Assembly (NCBI GenBank): GCA_950097015.1
Contig: CATNEN010000034.1
Span: 5,704,001 to 5,768,000, forward strand
Direction: 5' to 3'
DNA length: 64,000 nt
DNA from: Macrostomum hystrix
Lineage: Eukaryota; Animalia; Platyhelminthes
The position numbers and the translations under genes are program-made. Shown piece after piece: positions 4,731 through 47,626 of the stretch (position 1 is its first letter; each line of letters opens with the position of its first letter). The notes beneath the pieces are model-generated. The model was not told the DNA's origin, did no database searches, and saw only the letters and a list, made by a program, of their open reading frames with translations.

Positions 4731-5610
4731 CATTGTATCATCATCTCTCCATTGTATCATCTCTCCATTGTATCATCTCTCCATTGTATCATCTCTCCAT
4801 TGTATCATCTCTCCATTGTATCATCTCTCCATTGTATCATCTCTCCATTGTACCATCTCTCCCCTGTCTCATCTCTCCTGTGTCTCATCTCTCCCGTGTC
4901 TCATCTCTCCCGTGTCTCATCTCTCCCGTGTCTCATCTCTCCCGTGTCTCATCTCTCCCGTGTCTCATCTCTCCCGTGTCTCATCTCTCCCGTGTCTCAT
5001 CTCTCCCGTGTCTCATCTCTCCCGTGTCTCATCTCTCCCGTGTCTCATCTCTCCCGTGTCTCATCTCTCTATTGTATCATCTCTCCACTGTCTCGTCTCT
5101 CCACTGTATCATCTCTCCCGTGTCTCATCTCTTCAGTGTCTGATCTCTCTAATGGTTCATCTCTCCACTGTCTCATCTCTCCCGTGTCTCATCTCTCCCC
5201 TGTCTCATCTCTCCCGTGTCTCATCTCTCCCCTGTCTCATCTCTCCTGTGTCTCATCTCTCCCGTGTCTCATCTCTCCCGTGTCTCATCTCTCCCGTGTC
5301 TCATCTCTCCCGTGTCTCATCTGTCCCGTGTCTCATCTCTCCCATGTCTCATCTCTCCCGTGTCTCATCTCTCCCGTGTCTCATCTCTCCCGTGTCTCAT
5401 CTCTCCCGTGTCTCATCTCTCCCGTGTCTCATCTCTCCCGTGTCTCATCTCTCCCGTGTCTCATCTCTCTATTGTATCATCTCTCCACTGTCTCGTCTCT
5501 CCACTGTATCATCTCTCCCGTGTCTCATCTCTTCAGTGTCTGATCTCTCTAATGGTTCATCTCTCCACTGTCTCATCTCTCCCGTGTCTCACCTCATTCA
5601 TGTCTCATCT
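4731..5610. repeat. 16-bp minisatellite CTCTCCCGTGTCTCAT (5' variant CTCTCCATTGTATCAT)
   Basis: 16-bp period, seen as a 16-aa period in the overlapping ORFs 4646-5710; ends just before the acceptor at 5620. Confidence 0.96.
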
Positions 5611-5633
5611 CAGATTTCAGGTCTTATCAAAGC

Positions 5634-8600
5634 ATGCATTTGCAACTTCCGCTACTGCTGCTTCTGCTGGCCCTGGTCTCGGTGAGCCGGGCTGCTCGGA
5701 GCTCCGCTGAGAACACGTGAGTATAGTAGATAAAGCTGTTCTCAAAATGTTCTATCTTATATTATCCATGTTTGTTTTTTGGCTTCTGCAGAAAACGGAT
5801 AATTGACAGGATTCTAAAGAACTACACTAGACAGAACAGCCCGAATGGAGGTAATCTTAGCTAGTTTATTTATTGATAACATTTTCGGATAAGATAAGAT
5901 TTTCTCCATAATTAATTCTATAAAAAATCTACAAATTTCAGACTCCACAACAAATGTTTACATTGGCATCTACATTATCGGATTCTATTCCATTAGTGAG
6001 GCCACCATGGTGAGCATATTGCATCTACTAATTTACTCTAGACAGTTCTCGAGAACCGCTACGCCACTCACCCCAAGACATTGATCGATTTGGTTGAATC
6101 CTAAGGGTAAGATTCGAACTTCAGACCTCACGGTCAAGATTCCGTGAGAACTCTAAGCTCAACTCTATATTGACTCTTCTGATTCTGCTATTTACTCACA
6201 GCTCTGCATGATATGTATGTCTAGCCTAATAACCTCTTACTGACAAGGCTCTCCGAACTGCATGTACTTCATAACCCAATCCCAAGCACCCAAGCAGGCG
6301 ATTGAGTTTCATATGTAACTCTGATCTGCTGTAGCAGGCAAACTCTAATTTTTCAGTTTATACAGCGTTGATATTGGAGATGGACAAGTTGGTTAAATGA
6401 TTCCCTACTAGTTTAGACTGGTTGTACAGATTATCGAGAAAAATAGCATATCACTTTTCCAACCGGACCTGGTATTTCATATTATTTTTTCTAGTTAGTA
6501 CGAGTATTTAGGCCGAGAAATAGCAGCAATTTACATGAAAAACATTATAAATACTCGTAACTTGAATATTTGTTCACTAGTACTAGCACAGATGCTTCCT
6601 ATAAAAAAATATTTGTTTCTAAGGTTACTTCACGCAAATGCGCAGCAACAGACCTTCAATAACTGCTTGGAGGGGTGTACCTGACAATTCCTGCTTAACT
6701 TCTACAGGACTATTCCTTGACAATCTACTTGCGCCAGCAGTGGACAGACCCGCGCTTGAGATTCAACAGCAGCTTGGTTGGCGGCAAGACGAAGATTAAA
6801 CTCGAGGACAAAATCTGGGAGAAGATCTGGGTGCCGGATGTGTTCCTCAGGTGAAGTCATTATCCCATTGCTGTTTCTGGTGTTGTTATAATATAATAAT
6901 AATAATTGCAGGAGGGCTGCGGGCAATGGCACATCATTTAGTGACACTAGACCCCAGCCAGCGAGGAGGCAATTCTGCCCATTTCGCTGACTCCTGAGCA
7001 CACACGCACACAGATACTTTACGCAGGCACACACTCACGCAGGCGTGTACATCTGCCCTGACTTTCTCATCGTCAGGCAGTGTACACTCTCACTTTGTCT
7101 TGGAGGTTGGCCCTCAAGGGCGTAAATTGCACGACAAGCCCTCAAGCCTTCTCTCCGCGGACGCTGGTTGTAGCACAACATGGAACATAGTCATATAGTC
7201 GTGTAGTACAGGGGGGGGAACAAAAGTAAATAAAACGAAGCGATTGGAAAATTCTTGAGAGAGTGGAGAATGAAGAATAGAGACTACTCAACGGTGGTAT
7301 GGGACCAAAAGTGAGCTCAAAGGACCAGATGAAACAGGCTGCTTCGAGTTGGTCAGGGAGAATAAAAATCAATTTGTAGGCATCGATTTATTGGGCTCAG
7401 AGCAGCTCGGGCTCAGGAGTCTGGGTTGAATGGCAGCTGCAGACACTGTCCTACGCCGAGTTCGGTTTTGAGTTGTTTTTCTCCAGCAGGGACCGGAAGA
7501 TAGGCACCCCTCTTGTGTGCTCCTGGTTTTGCCACGATCTTTCCGAGGCCCTAGCTACCCCATGTGTGTAAGACGTGACAAGCGGCATTTAATATTCGAT
7601 CGCCAGTTCCATCTTGTCCAGCTGGCCGAGACCCCGACGGCTCAGGATGAACGAGAATCGCTGGTTAATATGCTTGCGCCGTAGTTGACATATAGTCAAT
7701 GGGAGGACTTTTATTGCCAATCTATGATAGTAAGGAAGCTGTCGATTTATAGGACCAACCCGATAGACGCAAAGGACGACCTGTCCTGTCAGAACTGATA
7801 AGTTGTGAATGATATGTAAAATTAAATTATTTATAATTCATCATTTTTCGGCTGAACGGCGTTCACTTTAATTGTCGATAAGCAGGAAAATTTTTAATTA
7901 CGCAGTCTTAATCTGGCTATTTGAAACGATTGATCTTAATTCACATTAGGAACAGATCTTTCTTACGCGCGTAATTATCTACGATTTGTGTTATCCAACA
8001 TTTTCGACTCGCAGAAACGAGAAGAAAGCTGACTTTCATTCAGTGACAATTCCCAATCGTTTCATGAATCTGCAGAGCGATGGCCAAATCTGGTATGTAA
8101 TCAAGTAAGTCGCCATGAAGTTTTTGGTCAACACTGTTTTAACACACAATCAAGGCCACATGTCTTAACCTGGGTCAAAATCCCGTGCGGTTATAGTCTG
8201 CTATTACTAAATATAGTAATAAGTTAGCATTGTAGGTTTTGCACAATCAGAGCAAGGAGAAACAGCTGGACCCTGGCCTAAACCGATTATAGCCTGTGTA
8301 CTGTCTGAAGCCGACACACGACCAGCTGTGCTATACCTTTCCTTCCCGCAGACTGTCCGTCACCCTGTCCTGCGAGATGGACTTGAAGAAGTATCCGCTT
8401 GACACCCAGATGTGCCCCATGATGTTTGAGAGCTGTGAGTGGCAGAGACTAGCTTGTTTCTGTGCTAGCAACTGTCGTGCTTTTGTTTAAATTTAAAGGA
8501 TATTTTTTCGATAGTTTGTCGAATCCATTTTCCAATATCGAAATCGCTACAATATTTTTAATCGCTTAACAGTAGAAAGACGACATTTTTCCCCTGTGGA

Positions 8601-10372
8601 TAGACCATGGGGTATTTCAAATACTCACTGCCTACTTCACGACAGCTCCCGAACCGAATGGTCACTCTCGTGAAAGTCCACCAAATGGATCGAAATTTTC
8701 CGCCCTTTACGACCAACTAACTTTCAAAGGCGTCCGACGTCAACATCGTCGAGTTATTCAGCGATTCTTGTCGAATCGAAGATGTTTTGTGGTTCTCGAA
8801 GTTGTTTCATCTGATAGAGCGGATAATTTTAGTCAGTGTTCTGGAATTTCATTCCGATTGGTTGAATATTAAAGGAGATACAGAAAAAAATTCGTATGTA
8901 TTTGTATTTTATATGTGAAGGTCTTTCTACTCTTAACCATTTTAACCAATCAGTTGGCCACACCATGGACACCGTGGCATTCTATTGGCTGCAGCCGCCT
9001 AGGCGACCAGACGACAGACCGGACGACCTCACCATGCCGCAGTTTGATCTGCGCAAAATTCATCTGAAATCATGCGGCCTGAACTACACCACCGGCGCCT
9101 ATCCCTGTCTGCAGATGACCTTCGAATTGAAGCGCGATTTCGGCTACTTTCTCATTCAGGTGTCTGCTGATATTCTCCAAATAAACTACTTTTTATACTT
9201 TACTGACTACTCGCAAGTAGAAATCTCAGCGCATTTTTGCCAACTTATGATTATTTTTATTCTACGCGATACGCAGATCTACATACCGACCATGCTGATT
9301 GTGATTCTGAGCTGGTTTGCATTCTGGCTGAACATCGACGCGGTGCCCGCCCGAGTTAGTCTGGGTTTGCTGACTGGTGAGTAGGGGTTGGTCATCGTGA
9401 GTCCTTCTTGCCACTGCTGCTCTAAGGCTCTTGATGTGTCGGTTGCGTTTCTGTATCACACCCGATTGCTGCTGACCCATGAGCACACACGCACACTGAT
9501 TCGTATACAGGCTTGCTGATCATATACTGCTCACATACTGCTCACATACTGCTCACATACTGCTCACATACTGCTCACATACTGCTCACATGCTGCTCAC
9601 ATACTGCTCACATACTGCTCACATACTGCTCACATACTGCTCACATACTGCTCACATACTGCTCACATACTGCTCACATACTGCTCACATACTGCTCGTC
9701 AGGCCTTGACGATTGTAGTAAACTGAATCTGGCTCGAACTAAACAATTCCAGTTTTGACCATCACAACCCAAGCGTCTGGCTCGAAGTCTTCCCTGCCGA
9801 AGGTGTCCTACATAAAGGCCATCGACGTCTGGATGAGCGCCTGCCTGGGCTTTGTGTTCGCCTCCCTGCTGGAATTCGCCATCGTGAATGTGTACAGTCG
9901 GCAAGGCGGCACAGGCGCAGGCGGTAGCGGAGGCCGTGGCCGCGTCAAACGGTCTAGCGCAACAAAGACGGGCGAGACAAAGAAGACTGCTAGAAAGTCG
10001 GCTGGCCCAGCTGCGGCGTCCCGACGACGCTTCCGCGGTCCTTGGAGCAGCGGCTGCAGCGGAGCGACAGGCAGCGCTAGCGGCGGCGTCGCCGGGGCTG
10101 GCGGCATCGGCAGCCGGAGCGACTCGCCAGTATTCGTGAGAGAACCGGCCGCTACTGCCGCCTTGGCGGCCGCTCCCGTTGCCACCGTATCTCATACCTC
10201 TCTGAATGTTGAGCCGCCACCGCCGCCACCGCCTCCGGCGCCGCAGCCGCCGACGCAGCCGCAGTTGCCGTCGATTGCAAAGCGCATTGACAAGTTCTCG
10301 CGGCGATTCTTTCCTCTCAGCTTCCTGCTGTTTAACGTGGTCTACTGGGTTTACTATATGATCATCGCCTGA
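5634..10372 (+). CDS. Cys-loop ligand-gated anion channel subunit (GlyR/GluCl-like), 9 exons, 483 aa
   Basis: Exons 5634-5716, 5792-5850, 5942-6009, 6708-6850, 8015-8104, 8352-8434, 8954-9159, 9277-9376, 9753-10372 are all GT-AG and sum to 1452 nt in frame. Signal peptide [20 protein letters not shown], loop A IWVPDVF, Cys loop [15 protein letters not shown], second Cys pair [12 protein letters not shown], anion-type M2 [21 protein letters not shown]3 IKAIDVW, M4 [10 protein letters not shown]. Confidence 0.95.
6890..7165 (-). mobile_element. Dispersed retroposon-like repeat (family A) with (ATT)n tail, in an intron of the channel gene
   Basis: Similar to 22681-22935, 37726-37919, 40817-40917 and 11868-11910. 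Shared blocks: cagccgcgg head, gtgtacac-ctgcc..ggcag-tgtacac hairpin, gcctcctcgc, tgtcactaaatgatg, cctcctgcaa followed by an ATT-rich tail. Confidence 0.7.
9523..9697. repeat. 11-bp tandem repeat CATACTGCTCA in the M2-splitting intron of channel 1
   Basis: About 16 direct copies. Confidence 0.95.
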
Positions 10373-10565
10373 TCGGAAAATTAAAATCTGCCACACGCTT
10401 AACTGTGTCGTCAGAAAAAAATAAACAAAAGTTTTAACTCCAAAGGAACATTTGACAAACTTTGATTTGCTTTGAAAAGCACGCTAGCTTAGAGAAAATG
10501 CACTTGCTCCTCTTGAAATCTGTAATAAGAAGCCGATAACGCCTGTTCGGTTCATTTAGTTCAAT

Positions 10566-11208
10566 CGGGTCACTCAGTACAGACAGTTCACTTCGGGTCA
10601 CTCACTACAGATAGTTCCATCGGGTCACTCAGTACAGACAGTTCACTTCGGGTCACTCACTACAGATAGTTCCATCGGGTCACTCAGTACAGACAGTTCA
10701 CTTCGGGTCACTCAGTACAGACAGTTCACTTCGGGTCACTCAGTACAGACAGTTCACTTCGGGTCACTCAGTACAGACAGTTCACTTCGGGTCACTCAGT
10801 ACAGACAGTTCACTTCGGGTCACTCAGTACAGACAGTTCCATCGGGTCACCACTACAGACAGTTCACTTCAGGTCACTCAGTACAGGCAGTTCACTTCGG
10901 GTCACTCAGTACAGGCAGTTCACTTCGGGTCACTCACTACAGATAGTTCCATCGGGTCACTCAGTACAGATAGTTCCATCGGGTCACTCAGTACAGACAG
11001 TTCCATCGGGTCACCACTGCAGACAGTTCACTTCGGGTCACTCACTACAGATAGTTCCATCGGGTCACCACTACAGACAGTTCACTTCGGGTCACTCACT
11101 ACAGATAGTTCCATCGGGTCACCACTACAGACAGTTCACTTCGGGTCACTCACTACAGATAGTTCCATCGGGTCACCACTACAGACAGTTCACTTCGGGT
11201 CACTCAGT
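10566..11208. repeat. 27/28-bp minisatellite CGGGTCACTCAGTACAGACAGTTCACTT between the two channel genes
   Basis: About 23 copies, with alternating -CACTT and -CCAT variants. Confidence 0.95.
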
Positions 11209-11867
11209 AAAGTTACTAATTTAGTTCATATGCGTTTAGAAGAAAGTTTAATATATGACCGTAAATGTTAACTTTTCATGGATTTAAAATTTTAGTAGTG
11301 CAAAATATATTGAGTCAGAACCACACATCACAGATTTGTATTATTTCTAAATGCACATTGCACTAAAGTATTCGATTTCAATCGATTTGTTCTCTGGGAT
11401 TTACAACAGCAATAACTACAAAGTACAACAATGTACGCTTTCAAGATGAAAAGAAAGCTAGGGATTCTTTCTCTCGACTGCATTCTAGTACCTAATTCAT
11501 TTGCCTCATGAACCTGGGTCTTCGGGTTAGGGTTGACTTCGGGTAGAACCGTTCTGACATTACTTGCAAAAACATTCTCTGCTCTTGACGACTAGCAGAG
11601 TGAAAAAGTTGAAAGACAGAGTACAGAGAGAAAGAACAGGAGAGAGAGAGTGGCTGCTGTTCCATCTGAAAACGCAGCTTTCACGAAATATCAAGAATAA
11701 TCTTTATTTCCAGTGACTAAGTGTTTAAATGTTCAGCAACTAGAAAATCGACGCCTTTTGTGACTTTTACCACGCAGTGATTCTTCTCTAGAAATTTTCT
11801 AACATCAAATAATCTGCAGGCCTTGGAGGTCTTCGAATACATTTGCCTCAGTGAGTAGCTAAGATTT

Positions 11868-11910: not shown

Positions 11911-12209
11911 AAGAACAGGACAGTCTGAGAAGGTGATAGAGTTAAGTGAGCGAGAGACAACTTCCAACTAATGCACGTTGAGATAAGGTAAATCTATCAT
12001 TTCCCTTTCAGATTGAAAGTGCCAAAGAACTATTCGCAAGTTTGGAGTCAGAATGCAGCAGCGCCACAATGCCCTGTCACTGATTTTGGTCCTGCTGACG
12101 GGTTCCGTGGCACTTTCTGCCGGTCAGCCTGCTCGAAGCTCATTGACATCTTGAGCAACCAATGAACAATTTTAATGAATACCTTTTTTGTCACCAAACA
12201 CCTTCTTGT

Positions 12210-12380
12210 TATTGAAAACCTTCCTGTTCTTGAACACCTGCCAGTTACTTTTCTGTTCTTGAACACCTGCCAGTTACCTTTCTGTTCTTGAACACCTTCT
12301 AGTTCTTGAACACCTTCTAGTTCTTGAACACCTTCTAGTTATTGAACACCTTCTATTTCTCGAACACAAGTTGTCGAACA
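12210..12380. repeat. Short degenerate 18-bp tandem repeat CTTGAACACCTTCTAGTT
   Basis: Several direct copies in the first intron of channel 2. Confidence 0.7.
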
Positions 12381-13050
12381 CTTTGACACACACTTTGTTG
12401 CTTTTCATTTGCTGATGCACTAAGAACGCAGCTAATGGACGAAATTCTGAAGAACTATAGCCGGATCGACAGTCCAAGCAGGGGTGAGACTGCTCCTTGC
12501 TCCTTGCCTTGCTTATCAATAGGATAAAATGATTATTGAATAATTTTATACAATAATTCATGCTTGTCCTGTTCAGATTCCACCACAAACGTTTACATTG
12601 GTGTCTACATTACTGGAATTCACTCGGTTAATGCTGCCGAAAACGTAAGTGGGATAGTTGTACACTGATTTGTGAATACATAATAATATACATAGCGATA
12701 GTAACCTCATAATATTATTGCCAGGAATACACAATGACATTTTACCTGCGTCAGAAGTGGACCGACTCGCGACTCAAGTTCGACTCGAATCTGGTTGGGG
12801 GCAAGAGCCAAATCACTCTGCAAGACAGCACACTGGAGAAGATTTGGGTGCCGGACGTGTTTTTCAGGTTAGAGTTCGACAAATTCATTGCGAAATCTTT
12901 TCCTATTCTCCCGTTTTTCATGTAATTTTTTACATGAGATTTTTGGTTGAACGAAAAATGACTGGTTATAAATAAGTATGAAGTCATATCCAAACCAAGA
13001 TATTAATATTCGAAGATTATATCGAAGCTTGTGACACTTACATAAGCCGA

Positions 13051-13273
13051 ATCTCGTCCTCGATGTACGCAGACGACATCTCGTCCTCGATGTACGCAGA
13101 CGAAATCTCGTCCTCGATGTACGCAGACGAAATCTCGTCCTCGATGTACGCAGACGAAATCTCGTCCTCGATGTACGCAGACGAAATCTCGTCCTCGATG
13201 TACGCAGACGAAATCTCGTCCTCGATGTACGCAGACGACATCTCGTCCTCGATGTACGCAGACGACATCTCGA
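13051..13273. repeat. 27-bp tandem repeat ATCTCGTCCTCGATGTACGCAGACGAA, intronic
   Basis: About 8 copies; explains the MYADEISSS ORFs. Confidence 0.95.
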
Positions 13274-13851
13274 CCCCAATGTACCCTAATGACCCAAATC
13301 GCCACCCGCTACTTCGTGCGAATTTTTTACATTTAAAGGCGGATCCCTCTAAAGTCACTCTAAGCCTTTGCAAACTTGATAGCTCTTAGCGACTAAAGCA
13401 GACCCCAGTTTAGATTTCTTCCCCATTTGGCAACCAATTATTATTAATAGGAACGAAAAGAAGGCCAAATTTCTCTCGGTTCCGATTTCAACTCGTTATT
13501 TGCAAGTGCGCAACGATGGTGGAGTCTGGTACGTCATGAAGTAAGCTTTTCATTCATTTTGGTATTAATTCCTACCCGTGTCTGCAGATGACATTCGAGC
13601 TGAAAAGAAACTATGGCACCTTCATTTTTCCGGTTTGCTCCCCGCGTTTCAGTTTTTATCATCTCTTATTGTTAATAAAAACGAATTATAGACAAAAAAT
13701 TTCACCACCTTTCCAGGTCTATTTCCCGAGCATTCTGATTGTTATGCTCAGCTGGCTGTCATTCTGGCTGAGCGGCAATGACACCGCTGCACGGGTCAGC
13801 CTGGGTCTACTGGGAGGTGAGCGAATGTAATTTCATTTATTATTTCACTGT

Positions 13852-14206
13852 GGTTATCAGCCATCGGTTATCAACCATCGGTTATCAACCATCGGTTATC
13901 AACCATTGGTTATCAACCATCGGTTATCAACCATTGGTTATCAACGATCGGTTATCAACCATTGGTTATCAACCATTGGTTATCAAACATTGGTTATCAA
14001 CCATCGGTTATCAACCATCGGTTATCAACCATCGGTTATCAACCATCGGTTATCAACCATCGGTTATCAACCATCGGTTATCAACCATCGGTTATCAACC
14101 ATCGGTTATCAACCATCGGTTATCAACCATCGGTTATCAACCATCGGTTATCTACCATCGGTTATCAACCATCGGTTATCAACCATCGGTTATCAACCAT
14201 CGGTTA
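13852..14206. repeat. 14-bp tandem repeat GGTTATCAACCATC in the M2-splitting intron of channel 2
   Basis: About 25 copies running up to the acceptor at 14212. Confidence 0.96.
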
Positions 14207-14934
14207 CTGCAGTCCTGGCCATCTTGATCCAGTCGACAGTGCTCCTGATATTCTATGCTCCGAGGACCTCCTACATCCGAGCCATAGACGTCTGGCTGAC
14301 GGCCTGTCTAGTGTTTATTTTCGCCTCGCTATTGGAATTCGGCGTCGTCAGTTTCTGCAGCCGCCACTTTGACCGCGCCGCTTCTGCCGCCTTCCCTATG
14401 GTTGCCATGCCAAACGAGGCAAAGGTGGAGGCGGCTGCTTCAGCTCAGCCGGTACAGCCTCGCCCGCAGCAGCAGCAGCAAGCCATAAACGCCGAGCTGT
14501 TGGACATGCTTGCCCGCGTAGGCTTCCCACTGGCCTTCCTGCTGTTCAACATTATCCTCTGGGCTTGCTGTCTGAGCTGAGCACCACACACACCAAGATC
14601 GTCAGTGTGCTGATTGTGCTGGGGTTGAAATCCCCCATAAACAATGGAGTCTTGGTAGCGTGCGGACCACTATTCTCATTTAGTTTTTCTGACTTTTTAG
14701 CATTATTGTCAATCTCCTGATCTCCTGATATGTACTATAGATTGCATATAAATTCGTGATCAAACACCTAGATCCTCGCCTAATTATCCCAAACTGTCTA
14801 CTAATTAGTCCTTTCCAATCATTTAGTTTTTTAGTTGGATCCGTCAACTCTCCAAGACTCTCTCTCGTTATTAAGCCACACAGAAGAGGATCTGCCGCTG
14901 TCTTTGTGTCTCTATTTTTATAAATGAAGATTAA

Positions 14935-24975: not shown

Positions 24976-27900
24976 ATGGATCGAATCGATAGACGAGATG
25001 GCGATCGCCACATATTTGCACGGCTCTATGTAAAAAGTCAAGTGTATCTAATGACTAAAGAGCGTGTTGTAGTAGGAAGAAACAGCAGTAAAGGAAGTGT
25101 TGATGTCGACATGGGCGTCTCCAACTTCATTTCAAGGAACCACCTTGAGCTTTTTCATTCCCAGAATCGCATATTCCTTCTCTGCAACGGAAAAAACGGA
25201 GTCTTTGTAAATAATGAGTTCCGAGCTCATTCAAAAGATCCTTACCTGCTACCAGAAAAGTAAGTATTTGTTACTTTTTCTATTTAACCTAAATACAGGC
25301 TGTAATATTGTTATAATTATCTTAATATGATCTTAATGCTATTGCTGATTATTCATAGAGTTATGCTATAACCAAATTTTTCCCATATCTGATTCTATAT
25401 AAAAGTATCTTTATCCATCACTAAAAAATTCCCATAACCTTCCATAACCTTCATATTATATGCATTGCTTCTATATAGATTTGTGTAACTCAGATAAATG
25501 ATATAATATATGTAGTTTACTCTCTACTATATTATTCTCTGTTAGGCACAACTTCCTTATAATGCTACATGTACATGGAAATTAAATCTTAAGAGCTGAA
25601 GTCCCCAATGCCAGCAAATCAAGAGTTTCCACTGTCAGTAGTCTTGAAGAAGTGCCTTTGTTATAATCCTATGATATCCTATCTATATTTAAAAGTTTAC
25701 ACCTACCAATATTTAACACACTATAGAGAACCCCAAATTTGTATGTGGCATTGAAATTTTAGAAGGGCTTGTGTCCCAAATACTAAAGAATTACGAGTTC
25801 CCATTTAGGCAGTCTGAAGTGTCTTCATATATATTTTTTGTCATTAGCCCTCATAAGGCTCTATATATTTTCATAGCCATCCTAATATCCCCCATAAACA
25901 TGCATGTAGCCTTGAAGTCTCAAAGGTCTTGAGTTTGTATTATTTTTTGTTTCTTTCTCTATCTCTTTCTTTTTTTCTTATCTTCGTTGTCACTGCATTG
26001 TTTGTTTTACTTATTTCGTTGCAAACTATATTTGAGAACTCAAGATATAAAAACTATATATATGAAACAGAAGTTCCTATAACCATATTCTTATCTATAA
26101 CTTCCCTTAGCCATCTGTAGTTATAGCAAAACTCTAATTATTCAGAATCAGAAGCTTATAATATATTTATTTCTTTGCAATACTAACCCTTGGTAGGAAA
26201 ATTATTTCAAAACCAAGTTTTTTGCTGCTTTCTTGTAGGTTTACAAAAGGCTTGTAGGCCTTTCACTATATAATAACTATATAACATGTACCTACTCGCT
26301 TGTAATAAGAAGTTCAATTGCAAAATATTTTTAACATTCTAAAGCTTAAAAAACTGAAAATGTGTCATTTTTTCAACAGTTAGCTAAGCAATTCTTATTA
26401 TATAGTTCTGTACAATAGAGTTTGTTTATTCTAAGCTTACATTTCAATATTTTTTTCCAATGTATGACAAGTTTATATTTTCCTCAATGATATAAGTAGC
26501 TATTTAAATATGTTATTTGTGTAAGTCAAAAGAGTCCAAAAAGTTATAAAAAGAAAAACATTAAGACTTGTGGTCTTTTGCCATTTTTATCAAAGCATAT
26601 AGCTTTTTTATTTTAGCATAAATAAACTAGCTAGCAACTGTTTAGTAAATTTGTTTTCTTTTATAGCTATTTTTAATGGAAGATTGCTATTTTCCATCTA
26701 GTTAATTTTATTCTTGTTTTTTGTTACTTACTATTACCTTTTAACTAATAGTCACAACATGTTTTAATGAACATTACATTTAAATAAAAGTTTACATAAA
26801 ACAACCAAACAAGCATTGTAATACACCTTCATATTGTTGTCATTTTGGTAACTTACTTAACTGTTACTGATGTGTTTATTGTTTTAATTTATATCCTTGT
26901 TAGAGTGTGCATATTTATCAAATCCATTATGGAGACAAATTTATATATAATATTATGGTATCTATATGTGCCAAGTATGGTTACATGTTACCTTATTTAT
27001 TATGTAGACTTTTCTGTTCATATATATTTTCTGGTATGAGACATTAAATTTTTACTTTATTAATATTATTTAGTCATTATTATTATTATCAAAAAGTCCA
27101 ACCCAAAGTATACCTACCAGTTCAGTTGTATCCCTGTGCATACCATATGATCCATGAGCATTATTTGTGTGGAAGCCAACAGACCATTTGTTAATATTAC
27201 TTTTTTTATATTTTTATTATAATTTTTTTATATTGTTAGTTATTCAGATATATAAATTCCGACCTATCAACAAGCTTTTTTAGTTACTTGAATATTTACT
27301 TCCGCGTTTTTTATAACGTTTGTTTGTCTAGTGCTTAACACTGAACCGAATTCCGCCAATTTTTAGTTGCAACATGAGATTCCCCAGCACCAATTTGAAG
27401 ATCTTTCTGGAGAGCTGCAAAGATGAAGAGCTTCACGTTCATCGGCAAAGTCAAAACCAGATGCTCAATCCGAGTCTGAGGTGAGCAGAGAAATCAAAAT
27501 TATTAGCTAGCGGGCCAAAGAAAAAAACTAAAAGACGACAGCGGGCCGCATTGACTGTAGAAGTATCAGATAGGGGAGAGATATACACAGAATAGATGAA
27601 AGGGGTAGACTGAGACCGAGGAGAGATGATACAGACGAATGGTAAAATATGATACTGTAGGTGTCGGAAAGGGCAACGGGCCGAACTTGGGAGCTTCGAG
27701 GGCCGCATCTGGCCCGCGGGCCGGAGTTTGCCGACCCCAGGTTTAGACACGAAATGAATGCCCAGAAATCCTAACGGCTTCCGTTCCAGCACCTCCGGCG
27801 GTGGCTCCTTGGACGGCGGCCTGTCTCCGCTGCACGACTACGACTGCAAGCCCGGCCTGGGGTCCAGCGAATCTGGCAAAAACGCTACAGACCGTTCCGT

Positions 27901-29020
27901 TATAGCTGGCGGCAATGGCAGTGGCGGAGCCTCCGCTGCCGCCGCCGCAGCTGCCGCCGCCGCATCCGCCGCCGCCGCCGGCATGCCTGACGACCTGCTG
28001 CTGCCGATTCGCCTGCCGGTGCCGCACGATGCTGACGATTTCCCGCCTGTGCCAGCCTCGAATGAGAAGCCGGCCTTCTCTTACGCCCAGCTCATAGTCC
28101 AGGCCATCATGAGCACACAGGAGCAGCAGATGACACTGAGTTCAATCTACAACTTTATCAGCCGGCACTATCCCTATTACAAGCCGTTTGAGAAGGGCTG
28201 GCAGAATTCCATCAGGCACAATCTGTCCCTTAATCGCTATTTCATTCGGGTGCCCAGGTCGCACGACGAGCCAGGCAAAGGTGCCTTCTGGACCATAGAC
28301 AGCGCCTATAAGCAGAAGCTGGCCGCCGGCGCCTACAGGCAGCGTCGGAGTCGCGGCGTGGCCGTCTATAGAAGCGACCCGGTGCTCATCAAGGCTGTGC
28401 AGCGCTACTCGCCAGATACAGGCGAGCTTGACTCACTTAGCAACTATATTCAGCACGCCCAGCAGATCAAGGCCAACCTTAGTCGGGACGCCTCGCCGGA
28501 GCCGCCAAGCTCAACTCAACAGCTCCTTCATCTTCATCATCAGCCGCACCAGATGTCGCACGACTCTTCTAATCTAGCCGGATCGTCGTCTTCGTCATCT
28601 TCGCAGCAGCAGCAGCAGCAGCAGGGTCATCATGCGCCCCCTAGTGGAAGCGGAGGCTCAACAGCATCGGCTTTGGCCGGTGCGGCCTCCAGCCGTGTTC
28701 AGCTACCAACCGGCGGCATTGTTCACACGCCCCGCCATCAGTCGGCCTCGTCTAACCTCATACAGTGGCGACGAAGCATCGCCGCCGCCAGGACTCCAAA
28801 CGCGTCGTTAACTGGCGCCGCTTCGTCCACCACCGCTGCCGTCGGCGACTCCTATGACGACGGTCCACCGCCGCCGAAATTGGCCCGGGAATTCGTTGTT
28901 GTAAACAGCTCAGCCGCTGACCGAGGCGACTCAGCGGCCGAGGCTGAGGAAGACGACGACGGATTGGCCGATGTCGATCCGGAGACTGAGCCCGACGATG
29001 ACGCCGGAGACAATGAGTAG
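24976..29020 (+). CDS. FOXK: Forkhead box K transcription factor (FHA + forkhead), 3 exons
   Basis: Exons 24976-25259, 27367-27480, 27766-29020 (phases 2, 2). FHA: VVVGRNSSKGSVDVDMGVSNFISRNHLE...NGKNGVFV...CNMRFPSTNLKI. Forkhead: KPAFSYAQLIVQAI...WQNSIRHNLSLNRYFIRVPRSHDEPGKGAFW. Confidence 0.95.
27686..27740 (-). mobile_element. One end of a hAT-like MITE in FoxK intron 2
   Basis: Minus strand GGGGTCGGCAAACTCCGGCCCGCGGGCCAGATGCGGCCC resembles hAT/Charlie-type termini; no matching opposite end identified. Confidence 0.45.
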
Positions 29021-45338: not shown

Positions 45339-47626
45339 CCCCTAATGGAGTGAATTTAAAAAAGCTGCGGACACTCCTGCTAGGTGCGCAGGTGGTTTCA
45401 AGAAAAAGAGCGCAAATGCACAATTGCTATATATTTTCAGTCTGACACAATGTTGTGATTGATTTCGCGAAAAAAATGACGAAAGAACTTTTATGATCTC
45501 CATAGTGTGTTTCTATAATTAGAACAGCTAAGGTTGTCTTTTCGCACTCAAGGACTGCAGAGCATGTAGTCCTGTTTGCGAATAAATGTGCAGCCCTCTA
45601 TCAAAAAATTTCTGTAACTGTGCCTGGTTAGAATTGCACCTACATGTACATGTAAGTTTATTTTAATATGTAATTGTATACCTAAGCACACAATAGTGTG
45701 GATGTATGGTATGGGTGCACTTGACTTACTTGACTTAGCGGCAGGGAGCCTCCATGACGGACGCAGCGAGGAGGCGGCTGATGCCACCCATATCGCTAAC
45801 CCCTGGCAGCCAGACAGCCTCCAGCGAGGCGGTGCCGCTCAGGGTGGTCCGTCGGTCGATTTCGCCGCGCGATCTTCCTCGCCATAGGCTGGGAAGAAAT
45901 CAGCTCGGCCGGTATCCCGGAGGAAGTGGGCGAGCTGTGGGATGTTCTCGGGCGAGCAGGCTTCGGCGAGAGTCGGTGCCGGCCCGAGATGTTTTAGCCT
46001 GGCCTGGGTGAAGGCCAGGCAGTGGCAGATGAAATGCTCTGCATTTTCGCGTCCGGAGCAGCAGAAGGGACACGTTTCCTCAGGCACGTGGCCTTGAAGG
46101 TAGCGGTGTCTGGTGAAGCAGCCATGTCCCGAAAGAGCCATAGTGACTGCTCTTAGGTCTCTGCGGTTAAGCCTGAGTAAGGCCTTACGCAGGTTACTAG
46201 AGGGGGTTGGCACCGCAGCCCTGGACTGGCGACAGTTCAGGGTGCTGGACCACCTCCTCCGGTGCTGGGTCTCCATCCAGCAGTTGATGCTGGAGTTGAC
46301 AACTGAGATGGGGATCGGGGACTCCGGGCCCAGGCCCATCAGGGAGCTGGCTGCTCCAGCCTTAGCAAGCTGGTCCGCCATCTCATTCCCTGTGAACCCG
46401 GCATGCCCAGGGATCCACAGCAGCTCCACCTTGTTAGACTGTGCCAACCCGTTTAACTGGGTGTTGCAGTCCAAGGTGGTTCTGGAGTGAGAGGTGCAGC
46501 GGCTGAGGGCCTTGAGGGCTGCTTGACTGTCGGAGTGAAAAAAGATCCTCTGACCAGCCAGCTGCCTCTGGCGCAGCTCAGCCGCACAGAAGCTGATGGC
46601 GAGCACTTTGTTTTGGAAAATGCTAGAGCTCTTGCCACAGTATTGGGAGTGGGTCCAGAGGACCTCACCACCTGAGGCGACGCACACTCCGAATCCCGAT
46701 TTACCGTTCATCAGAGAGCCGTCAGTGTAACAGTGGACTGCCGGGTCATCCCAGCAGTCCTTTACCTCATTACGAGGGGAGATGCTGACTTTGTACCTGT
46801 GGCTCCAGAGTAAAGTGGCCGGGGCCCCGTCCGAAAGGATGGTGAGCCCTCCGCACTCGCCCAGAGTTTTCAGGCAGAGGTCAGAGTGAGGCAGAAGGGA
46901 GCGCTTCGAGAAGGCTCGCGAATTCTGGAAGGAGACACCCGCATCAAGAAGACGACGGGTGGACTTTGCTGCTTCCCCCTTGACGAAAATGTCAATGGGT
47001 GTAGCGTTGAGGAAAGCATTCATGCCTTCAAAGGGAGTGGAGGGTGGGGCGCCCAGCGTCATACGACAGACTCTGCCCTGCACCCTATAAAGCGCCTCCA
47101 GGTTTTTCTGGATGCCCATGGCGCTGGCCCAGATGAGGCCAGCATAAGCGACGGACGGTCTAATGATCGCCGTGTAAATCCACCAAAGGTTCTTGGGGGT
47201 TAGCCCCCAGGTGGTGCCCACGGCACGCCTGACTTGCGCCAGTATGGCCAGGGGTATGGGTGCACACTGCTATTACCATGTGCACCTATAGATGTACATT
47301 TAAATGTATTTTATGTGTCCTAATGTACATATATTTAAACACACAAGGTGCGAGTACAGAGGCACTGGCATTCACTACTAACATTGCATCTACATGTACT
47401 TGTACATGTAAATGTATTACAAAAAAGAAATTTATAAAGAACACAAGACGTTAGTGTAGGGGCACAAGGGCGCACTGTTTGTTATACATCTACATACTTA
47501 TAACAACTTAACGCACACAAGGCGCAGCTGCGCGGACAGGATTTTCTTTCTGCACAGCTGCGCAGGCAATTTTTAACAAGTGCGCTGGACACTGTCCGCA
47601 AAAACCCCTATTGGCTCCGATAGGGG
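45339..47626. mobile_element. Putative non-autonomous DNA element hosting the LINE
   Basis: Imperfect TIRs CCCCTAATGGAG / CTCCGATAGGGG (10 of 12) flanked by a direct AAGTGA (45333-45338, 47627-47632); about 740 bp without the LINE. Confidence 0.45.
45721..47252 (-). mobile_element. 5'-truncated non-LTR retrotransposon with RNase H (I group, LOA-like)
   Basis: Open frame 45839..47221: [18 protein letters not shown] (RT C-terminus), RNase [31 protein letters not shown], terminal CPFC..HFICHC; short tandem tail TAAGTCAAG; perfect 13-bp TSD GGTATGGGTGCAC (45708-45720, 47253-47265). Confidence 0.93.

Follow-up and report, generated by a model that had tools for sequence, protein, structure and literature searches.

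A tandem Cys-loop channel duplicate of Macrostomum hystrix without a Cys loop is probably a young, still transcribed pseudogene

Introduction

The human gene dup-alpha7 (CHRFAM7A), a partial duplication of CHRNA7, is without part of the ligand-binding domain, keeps the membrane segments M1-M4, and is discussed as a dominant-negative partner; it has a continuous reading frame that runs from new 5' exons, and it is demonstrably expressed. In Cys-loop channels, the M2-M3 linker couples the Cys loop to the pore. In the oscillator allele of mouse Glra1 (spd-ot), a microdeletion shifts the reading frame of an anion-selective Cys-loop subunit; transcripts but no protein were found in vivo, and the allele is a null (PMC4891346). 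The lesion is a 7-bp deletion in the region of the M3-M4 loop, and complementation between the split domains requires their over-expression in vitro (PMC4891346).

The window analysed here, meaning the whole 64 kb stretch of Macrostomum hystrix DNA in which all positions are counted, contains two Cys-loop anion-channel genes head to tail on the + strand, which we call copy 1 and copy 2. Copy 2 descends from the Cys-loop family yet cannot encode a full member of it. The original prediction for this locus had offered three readings: a pseudogene, an assembly gap, or a transmembrane-only pentamer subunit accompanied by a secreted partial ligand-binding fragment. We put a probability of about 0.7 on copy 2 being a young, unprocessed, still weakly transcribed pseudogene, or a fixed null allele, of a tandem Cys-loop anion-channel duplicate.

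Results

Exons were searched singly, and frames across exon junctions were counted in scripts; the resulting maps of both genes are given in Table 1. In copy 1, the Cys loop (C-x13-C) is encoded by exon 6 (8352-8434) and the loop-C cysteine pair by exon 7, and the gene carries PAR (Pro-Ala-Arg), the anion-selectivity motif located before M2 at its cytoplasmic mouth, in addition to M1-M4. The Pfam profile Neur_chan_LBD (PF02931) matched its exons 4 and 6, and Neur_chan_memb (PF02932) its exon 9. The solved structures nearest to the exons of copy 2 were glycine, GABA and GluCl receptors, by which the pair was assigned to the anion-channel branch. An orthologue-like match to copy 1 was found in the UniParc entry P0024, with 74-94% identity per exon; its UniParc number falls in the range of a Macrostomum lignano protein. 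P0024 has 1001 aa and is probably a fused gene model, and its residues 479-489 hold about nine residues at the place of the 27-residue Cys-loop exon (compare 8352-8434 in the window), so that the small Cys-loop exon may have been missed in its annotation.

Table 1. Exon maps of the two tandem Cys-loop channel genes, in window positions.
Feature	Position	Strand	Description
Copy 1	5634-10372	+	nine exons, 1452 nt, terminal stop only, 483 aa; frame and splice sites counted by script
Copy 1 exons	5634-5716, 5792-5850, 5942-6009, 6708-6850, 8015-8104, 8352-8434, 8954-9159, 9277-9376, 9753-10372	+	canonical borders throughout
Copy 2	12053-14580	+	second gene of the tandem pair
Copy 2 exon 1 (signal peptide)	12053-12150	+	starts at ATG 12053; ORF meets TGA 12152
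Copy 2 exon 2	12425-12483	+	59 nt; length and phase as copy 1 exon 2
Copy 2 exon 3	12577-12644	+	68 nt; length and phase as copy 1 exon 3
Copy 2 exon 4	12725-12867	+	143 nt; length and phase as copy 1 exon 4; retains the ligand-binding-domain motifs WTDSRL and WVPDVFF
Copy 2 exon 5	13451-13540	+	90 nt; ends two nt into a codon (AA); donor GTAAGC
Deletion scar	13541-13569	+	29 AT-rich nt from the exon-5 donor to the exon-7 remnant
Copy 2 exon-7 remnant	13570-13632 (start near 13570)	+	second loop-C cysteine, pre-M1, first M1 residues
Copy 2 intron between exons 7 and 8	13633-13716	+	84 nt, multiple of three, stop-free
Copy 2 exon 8	13717-13816	+	100 nt; length and phase as copy 1 exon 8; rest of M1, start of M2
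Copy 2 intron 8	13817-14212	+	occupied by a minisatellite with a 14-nt unit (13852-14206, about 25 copies)
Copy 2 exon 9	14213-14580	+	368 nt; end of M2, M2-M3 linker, M3, short intracellular loop, M4, stop
Probable copy 2 3' UTR	14581-14783	+	end estimated from how long the X2 contig is; TATAAA at 14747

The internal exons of copy 2 have canonical AG/GT borders and correspond in length to exons 2-5 and 8 of copy 1; the exact agreement of these five exons in length and phase, which the original prediction had noted, held when it was re-derived in scripts. The eight remaining exons contain no stops or frameshifts, and their splice sites are canonical with the exception of the exon-1 donor. PF02931 matched exon 4 with an E-value of 1.2e-10, above the curated cut-off, and the Neur_chan_LBD domain of copy 2 is incomplete, with about profile positions 46-89 represented in addition to the neighbouring exons. 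PF02932 matched exon 8 (positions 1-30, E 1.3e-9) and, in two stretches, exon 9, in which M3 and M4 aligned with glycine receptor alpha chains at E 6e-16. The segment before M2 reads AAR where copy 1 reads PAR. The C-terminal half of M2 and the M2-M3 linker (14215-14260) read LAILIQSTVLLIFYAP, which is hydrophobic and unlike the family norm; the linker is without the usual Ser/Gly-rich stretch and without a basic residue to match the Lys of copy 1, and no compensated frameshift behind it was found by eye.

Compared with copy 1, copy 2 misses 226 coding nt, a length that is not a multiple of three: the 83 nt of exon 6 are gone entirely, and exon 7 has lost its first 143 nt. This figure and the distance of only 29 nt between exon 5 and the exon-7 remnant had both been stated before and were re-derived here. 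The counterpart of the 29-nt scar in copy 1 is the interval 8105-9096, which spans 992 nt and contains exon 6 together with the 143 nt of exon 7. What is left of this exon in copy 2 reads SYPCLQ/MTFELKR and is identical to copy 1 at 25 of 28 nt across the border. Similarity between the scar and intron 5 of copy 1 was not significant, with 521 of 2000 shuffles scoring as well. As read from exons 6 and 7 of copy 1 rather than mapped residue by residue, the deletion would have taken the Cys loop and most of the remaining ligand pocket, including the first loop-C cysteine. No Cys loop is encoded by copy 2 or by any part of the window outside copy 1, and tblastn found no counterparts of copy 1 exons 6 and 7 elsewhere in the 64 kb.

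The immediate stops that had been predicted downstream of exon 5 were reproduced: splicing 13540>13588 gives AA/A TGA, and retention of the gap gives AAG TAA. When exon 5 was joined straight to exon 8 or 9 in a reading by hand, the frame was shifted as well. Two in-frame cryptic joins, 13532>13588 and 13540>13608, are possible on paper, the acceptor at 13608 being without a pyrimidine tract. The ATG at 13588, preceded by ctgcag, does open a frame of 45+100+368 nt that encodes 170 aa with M1-M4, and by our own reading this frame stays open, at about 198 aa, when the 84-nt intron is retained. The deletion did not, however, create this start: throughout the family, an internal Met is ordinarily encoded here, and Leu-Gln-Met, within LQMTFELKR, is found in copy 1 exon 7 too.

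Exon 1 of copy 2 aligns with exon 1 of copy 1 through a common ARSS segment; the donor position reads GTGAGT in copy 1 and TTGAGC in copy 2. When all GT and GC donors before TGA 12152 were combined with the two possible acceptors of exon 2, no canonical in-phase GT donor was found, and the donor/acceptor pairs that keep the frame were weak or non-canonical only. Loss of the exon-1 donor is probably a second lesion, independent of the deletion; it is graded as probable rather than certain because the exon-1 alignment is short and diverged. The same loss makes a secreted N-terminal fragment harder to uphold, as it would be without a proper signal-peptide join. Such a fragment would also end part-way through the ligand-binding beta-sandwich, as exons 6 and 7 of copy 1 supply the remainder, and this half of the transmembrane-plus-secreted reading found no support.

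The region of the junction was then compared with contigs of public runs over 13272-13852, a range that avoids both neighbouring minisatellites. In run X1, one contig of short-read DNA type covers this range with no differences at a word depth of 72; it is unbroken between the two minisatellites, with no branch at the scar, and no second allele was seen. X1 behaves as genomic DNA, given that a contig of an unrelated paralogue in the same run has a depth of 70. In run X2, another sample under a different organism code, a contig of 1145 nt is identical over 13272-13816. X1 and X2 come from one study, and the assembly itself may have been made from the X1 sample, so that their agreement is not population evidence. 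A second X1 record matches 13729-13767 with 3 differences and has flanks that are not in the window; judging by this match, it evidently belongs to another Cys-loop paralogue elsewhere in the genome that has the M1-coding segment in common.

The junction of copy 2 is no assembly artefact. The opposite case, in which the missing exons are present in the animal and were collapsed out of the assembly, could draw on the minisatellites in introns 4 and 8 that flank the region, as such repeats can mis-assemble, and on X1 being not fully independent if it is the assembly source. We regard this as exceedingly improbable: the scar is embedded in unique sequence, with about 260 nt between it and each minisatellite, the de Bruijn contig of X1 crosses it at full depth without a branch, X2 carries it without differences in a different sample, and the sequence of exons 6 and 7 occurs nowhere else in the window. 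The assembly gap proposed in the original prediction was thereby set aside, the contigs of both runs carrying the junction unchanged.

Past 13816, the X2 contig goes on for 30 further letters, which fit exactly at 14213, where exon 9 begins. Although its run bears the label 'DNA?', we take the contig to be RNA-derived because the 396-nt GT...AG interval (13816>14213) has been exactly removed. With a depth of 2.8, the contig is colinear through the end of intron 4, the scar, 13588 and the 84-nt intron; 13816>14213 is its one splice. The copy 2 locus is weakly transcribed and poorly processed, and its last intron is still spliced. As the sole transcript contig seen, X2 is without a continuous frame that has its own start, and it carries neither a spliced leader nor a 5' end at 13588; contigs can miss rare isoforms and starts. 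Minisatellites were observed at 5000-5611, 9516-9697, 10558-11209, 12197-12367, 13050-13284 and 13852-14206, that is upstream of, between and inside the channel genes, with unrelated units of 16, 11, 28/54, 18/29/36, 27 and 14 nt, in that order. Intron 8 of both copies carries one, and the units differ.

As a separate observation, among the 15 introns of the two genes, the intron between exons 7 and 8 is the only one that is both a multiple of three and stop-free, which it is in either copy. It measures 117 nt in copy 1 (9160-9276) and 84 nt in copy 2 (13633-13716), the two sequences are unrelated, and that of copy 2 is the intron kept in the X2 transcript contig. This may be due to chance, or may reflect a tolerated retained-intron form that adds 39 or 28 residues within M1.

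A transmembrane-only subunit had been the most far-reaching part of the original prediction. In its wider form, it would be a truncated functional subunit, either membrane-only, with M1-M4 translated from ATG 13588 or from a spliced-leader AUG at the ctgcag acceptor, or deleted for the ligand domain through a cryptic in-frame splice, and it would act as a silent or dominant-negative partner of copy 1 or of other subunits. The open 170-aa frame, the good conservation of M3 and M4, the transcription of the locus with splicing of exon 8 to exon 9, and the cryptic joins 13532>13588 and 13540>13608, in so far as they work on paper, are all in keeping with such a product, as is the fact that 2m6b, a solved structure of the glycine receptor transmembrane domain alone, was the top PDB match. 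Against this stands the sole transcript contig, which passes 13588 without a leader and keeps both upstream intron sequence and the 84-nt intron. ATG 13588, as an ancestral internal Met, is no novelty; the ELKR flank is net positive, and by the positive-inside rule would disfavour insertion of M1 with its N-terminus outside when there is no signal peptide. The M2-M3 linker is degraded, as is the PAR motif, the acceptor at 13608 is without a pyrimidine tract, and no similar short protein was found in the databases searched. Together with the conservation of the membrane exons, which is no better than that of the now useless ligand-domain exons, this makes a truncated working subunit unlikely, and the transmembrane-only product found no support in the transcript contig, which is colinear through 13588 with no start there. 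The specific proposal that the deletion made copy 2 a natural membrane-only or ligand-domain-deleted subunit (via Met 13588, a spliced-leader AUG or a cryptic splice) that co-assembles with full-length subunits to tune or silence them, and is the flatworm counterpart of dup-alpha7 by another route, is still more doubtful, and we would give it only a small chance.

Divergence was compared separately for the two halves of the gene. Between copy 1 and copy 2, the ligand-domain exons gave pN 0.22 and pS 0.71 with an omega of about 0.115, and the membrane exons pN 0.20 and pS 0.64 with an omega of about 0.155, dS being saturated in both cases; these omega values reflect the time before the deletion and not selection since it. 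For the greater part of the period after the duplication, both halves evolved under purifying selection. The dN/dS of M1-M4 against the intact channel, which had been named as a means of telling a plain pseudogene from a retained subunit, is the second of these values and measures the time before the deletion. That the ligand-domain exons look as constrained as the membrane exons fits a recent deletion, and not long-term retention of a membrane-only product. Against 53 outgroup receptors, the score of copy 2 fell below that of copy 1 in 7 of 8 homologous blocks, ligand and membrane domains alike, even though the outgroup receptors had been chosen with copy 2's own exon 9; this marks copy 2 as the faster-evolving duplicate throughout.

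Relatives of copy 2 were sought by several routes. Word searches in which exon 9, the 80-aa ORF at 13588 or the 224-aa ORF, cut down to exon 9, served as the query returned no match, and a HMMER scan of exon 9 against 1.84 billion representatives (50% clustering) gave no match below 1e-30. A close relative of exon 9 or of the M1 exon was not found in the word searches or the HMMER scan, and nothing nearer to copy 2 than P0024 emerged from them, which is weak evidence in view of the limits on length and of the clustering at 50%. The best HMMER match of exon 9, P0001, a fused model from Macrostomum lignano, proved to be a different paralogue. An exact-protein look-up of two ORFs of the window in public assemblies found nothing.

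Outside the channel genes, a single-exon ORF of 420 aa at 27758-29020 contains a Forkhead domain (E 1e-35) and represents a fox-family transcription factor gene. A 460-aa ORF with an RNase H domain, at 45839-47221 on the - strand, is probably part of a retroelement.

Discussion

Relative to its functional paralogue, copy 2 carries disabling lesions for which there is no canonical splice rescue, namely the 226-nt frameshifting deletion and, probably, the loss of the exon-1 donor. The frameshifting deletion, the lack of a canonical rescue, the loss of the exon-1 donor and a low-depth, incompletely spliced transcript contig together led us to the pseudogene reading, which was the best supported of the three that had been put forward. 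The open exons, the canonical splice sites, the transcription, the 170-aa frame, and M3 and M4 matching glycine receptors are points against it.

A genomic deletion with one end a little way into intron 5 and the other within exon 7 removed the 226 coding nt and shifted the frame. In the course of events that we envisage, the promoter and most splice signals of copy 2 would still work, and mRNA starting from exon 1 or 2 would meet a stop right after exon 5 and be degraded or yield an unfoldable stub; exon 1 would no longer be properly joinable. That the remaining exons are open and look constrained would be due to divergence between copies 1 and 2 that for the most part predates the deletion, and not to retention of a membrane-only product.

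A related possibility is that the deletion allele still segregates in the species: the null would then be fixed in the sequenced inbred line alone, and wild animals would carry intact copy 2 alleles. Published Macrostomum genome lines, which may or may not include the source of X1 and X2, are strongly inbred (PMC10468722); both runs are from one study, and the deletion looks young, with no further lesions in eight exons. As the exon-1 donor lesion suggests more than one disabling event, we judge a segregating allele to be very unlikely.

As a pseudogene, copy 2 would chiefly matter for annotation: automated gene prediction will probably yield either a spurious channel without a Cys loop or two fragment genes at this place, and such mis-annotation would inflate the counts of ligand-gated channels in flatworms. 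It would also offer a dated snapshot of gene death just after disabling, in which transcription and splicing persist while the frame is broken. If a membrane-only product were made and active, it would bear on the tolerance of pentameric channels for subunits without a ligand-binding domain.

Among the systems to which copy 2 can be compared, dup-alpha7 is likewise a duplicated Cys-loop subunit with partial loss of the ligand domain and with M1-M4 kept, but copy 2 is without the continuous frame and without evidence of a dedicated start. The isolated glycine receptor transmembrane domain 2m6b, the best PDB match of exon 9, corresponds to the M1-M4 frame of copy 2; it is, however, an engineered construct and not a natural product, and copy 2 has a divergent M2-M3 linker and selectivity motif. 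Oscillator and copy 2 are both frameshifting deletions in anion-selective Cys-loop subunits from which transcripts are made, and they differ in size and place: 7 bp in the M3-M4 loop against about 1 kb (on the scale of copy 1) in the ligand-binding domain. Like the unprocessed pseudogenes of Cys-loop subunits, copy 2 is a tandem duplicate that keeps its introns and exon structure, carries a frameshifting deletion together with a splice-site change, and is transcribed at a low level; it differs from them in being very young, with no other exon damaged.
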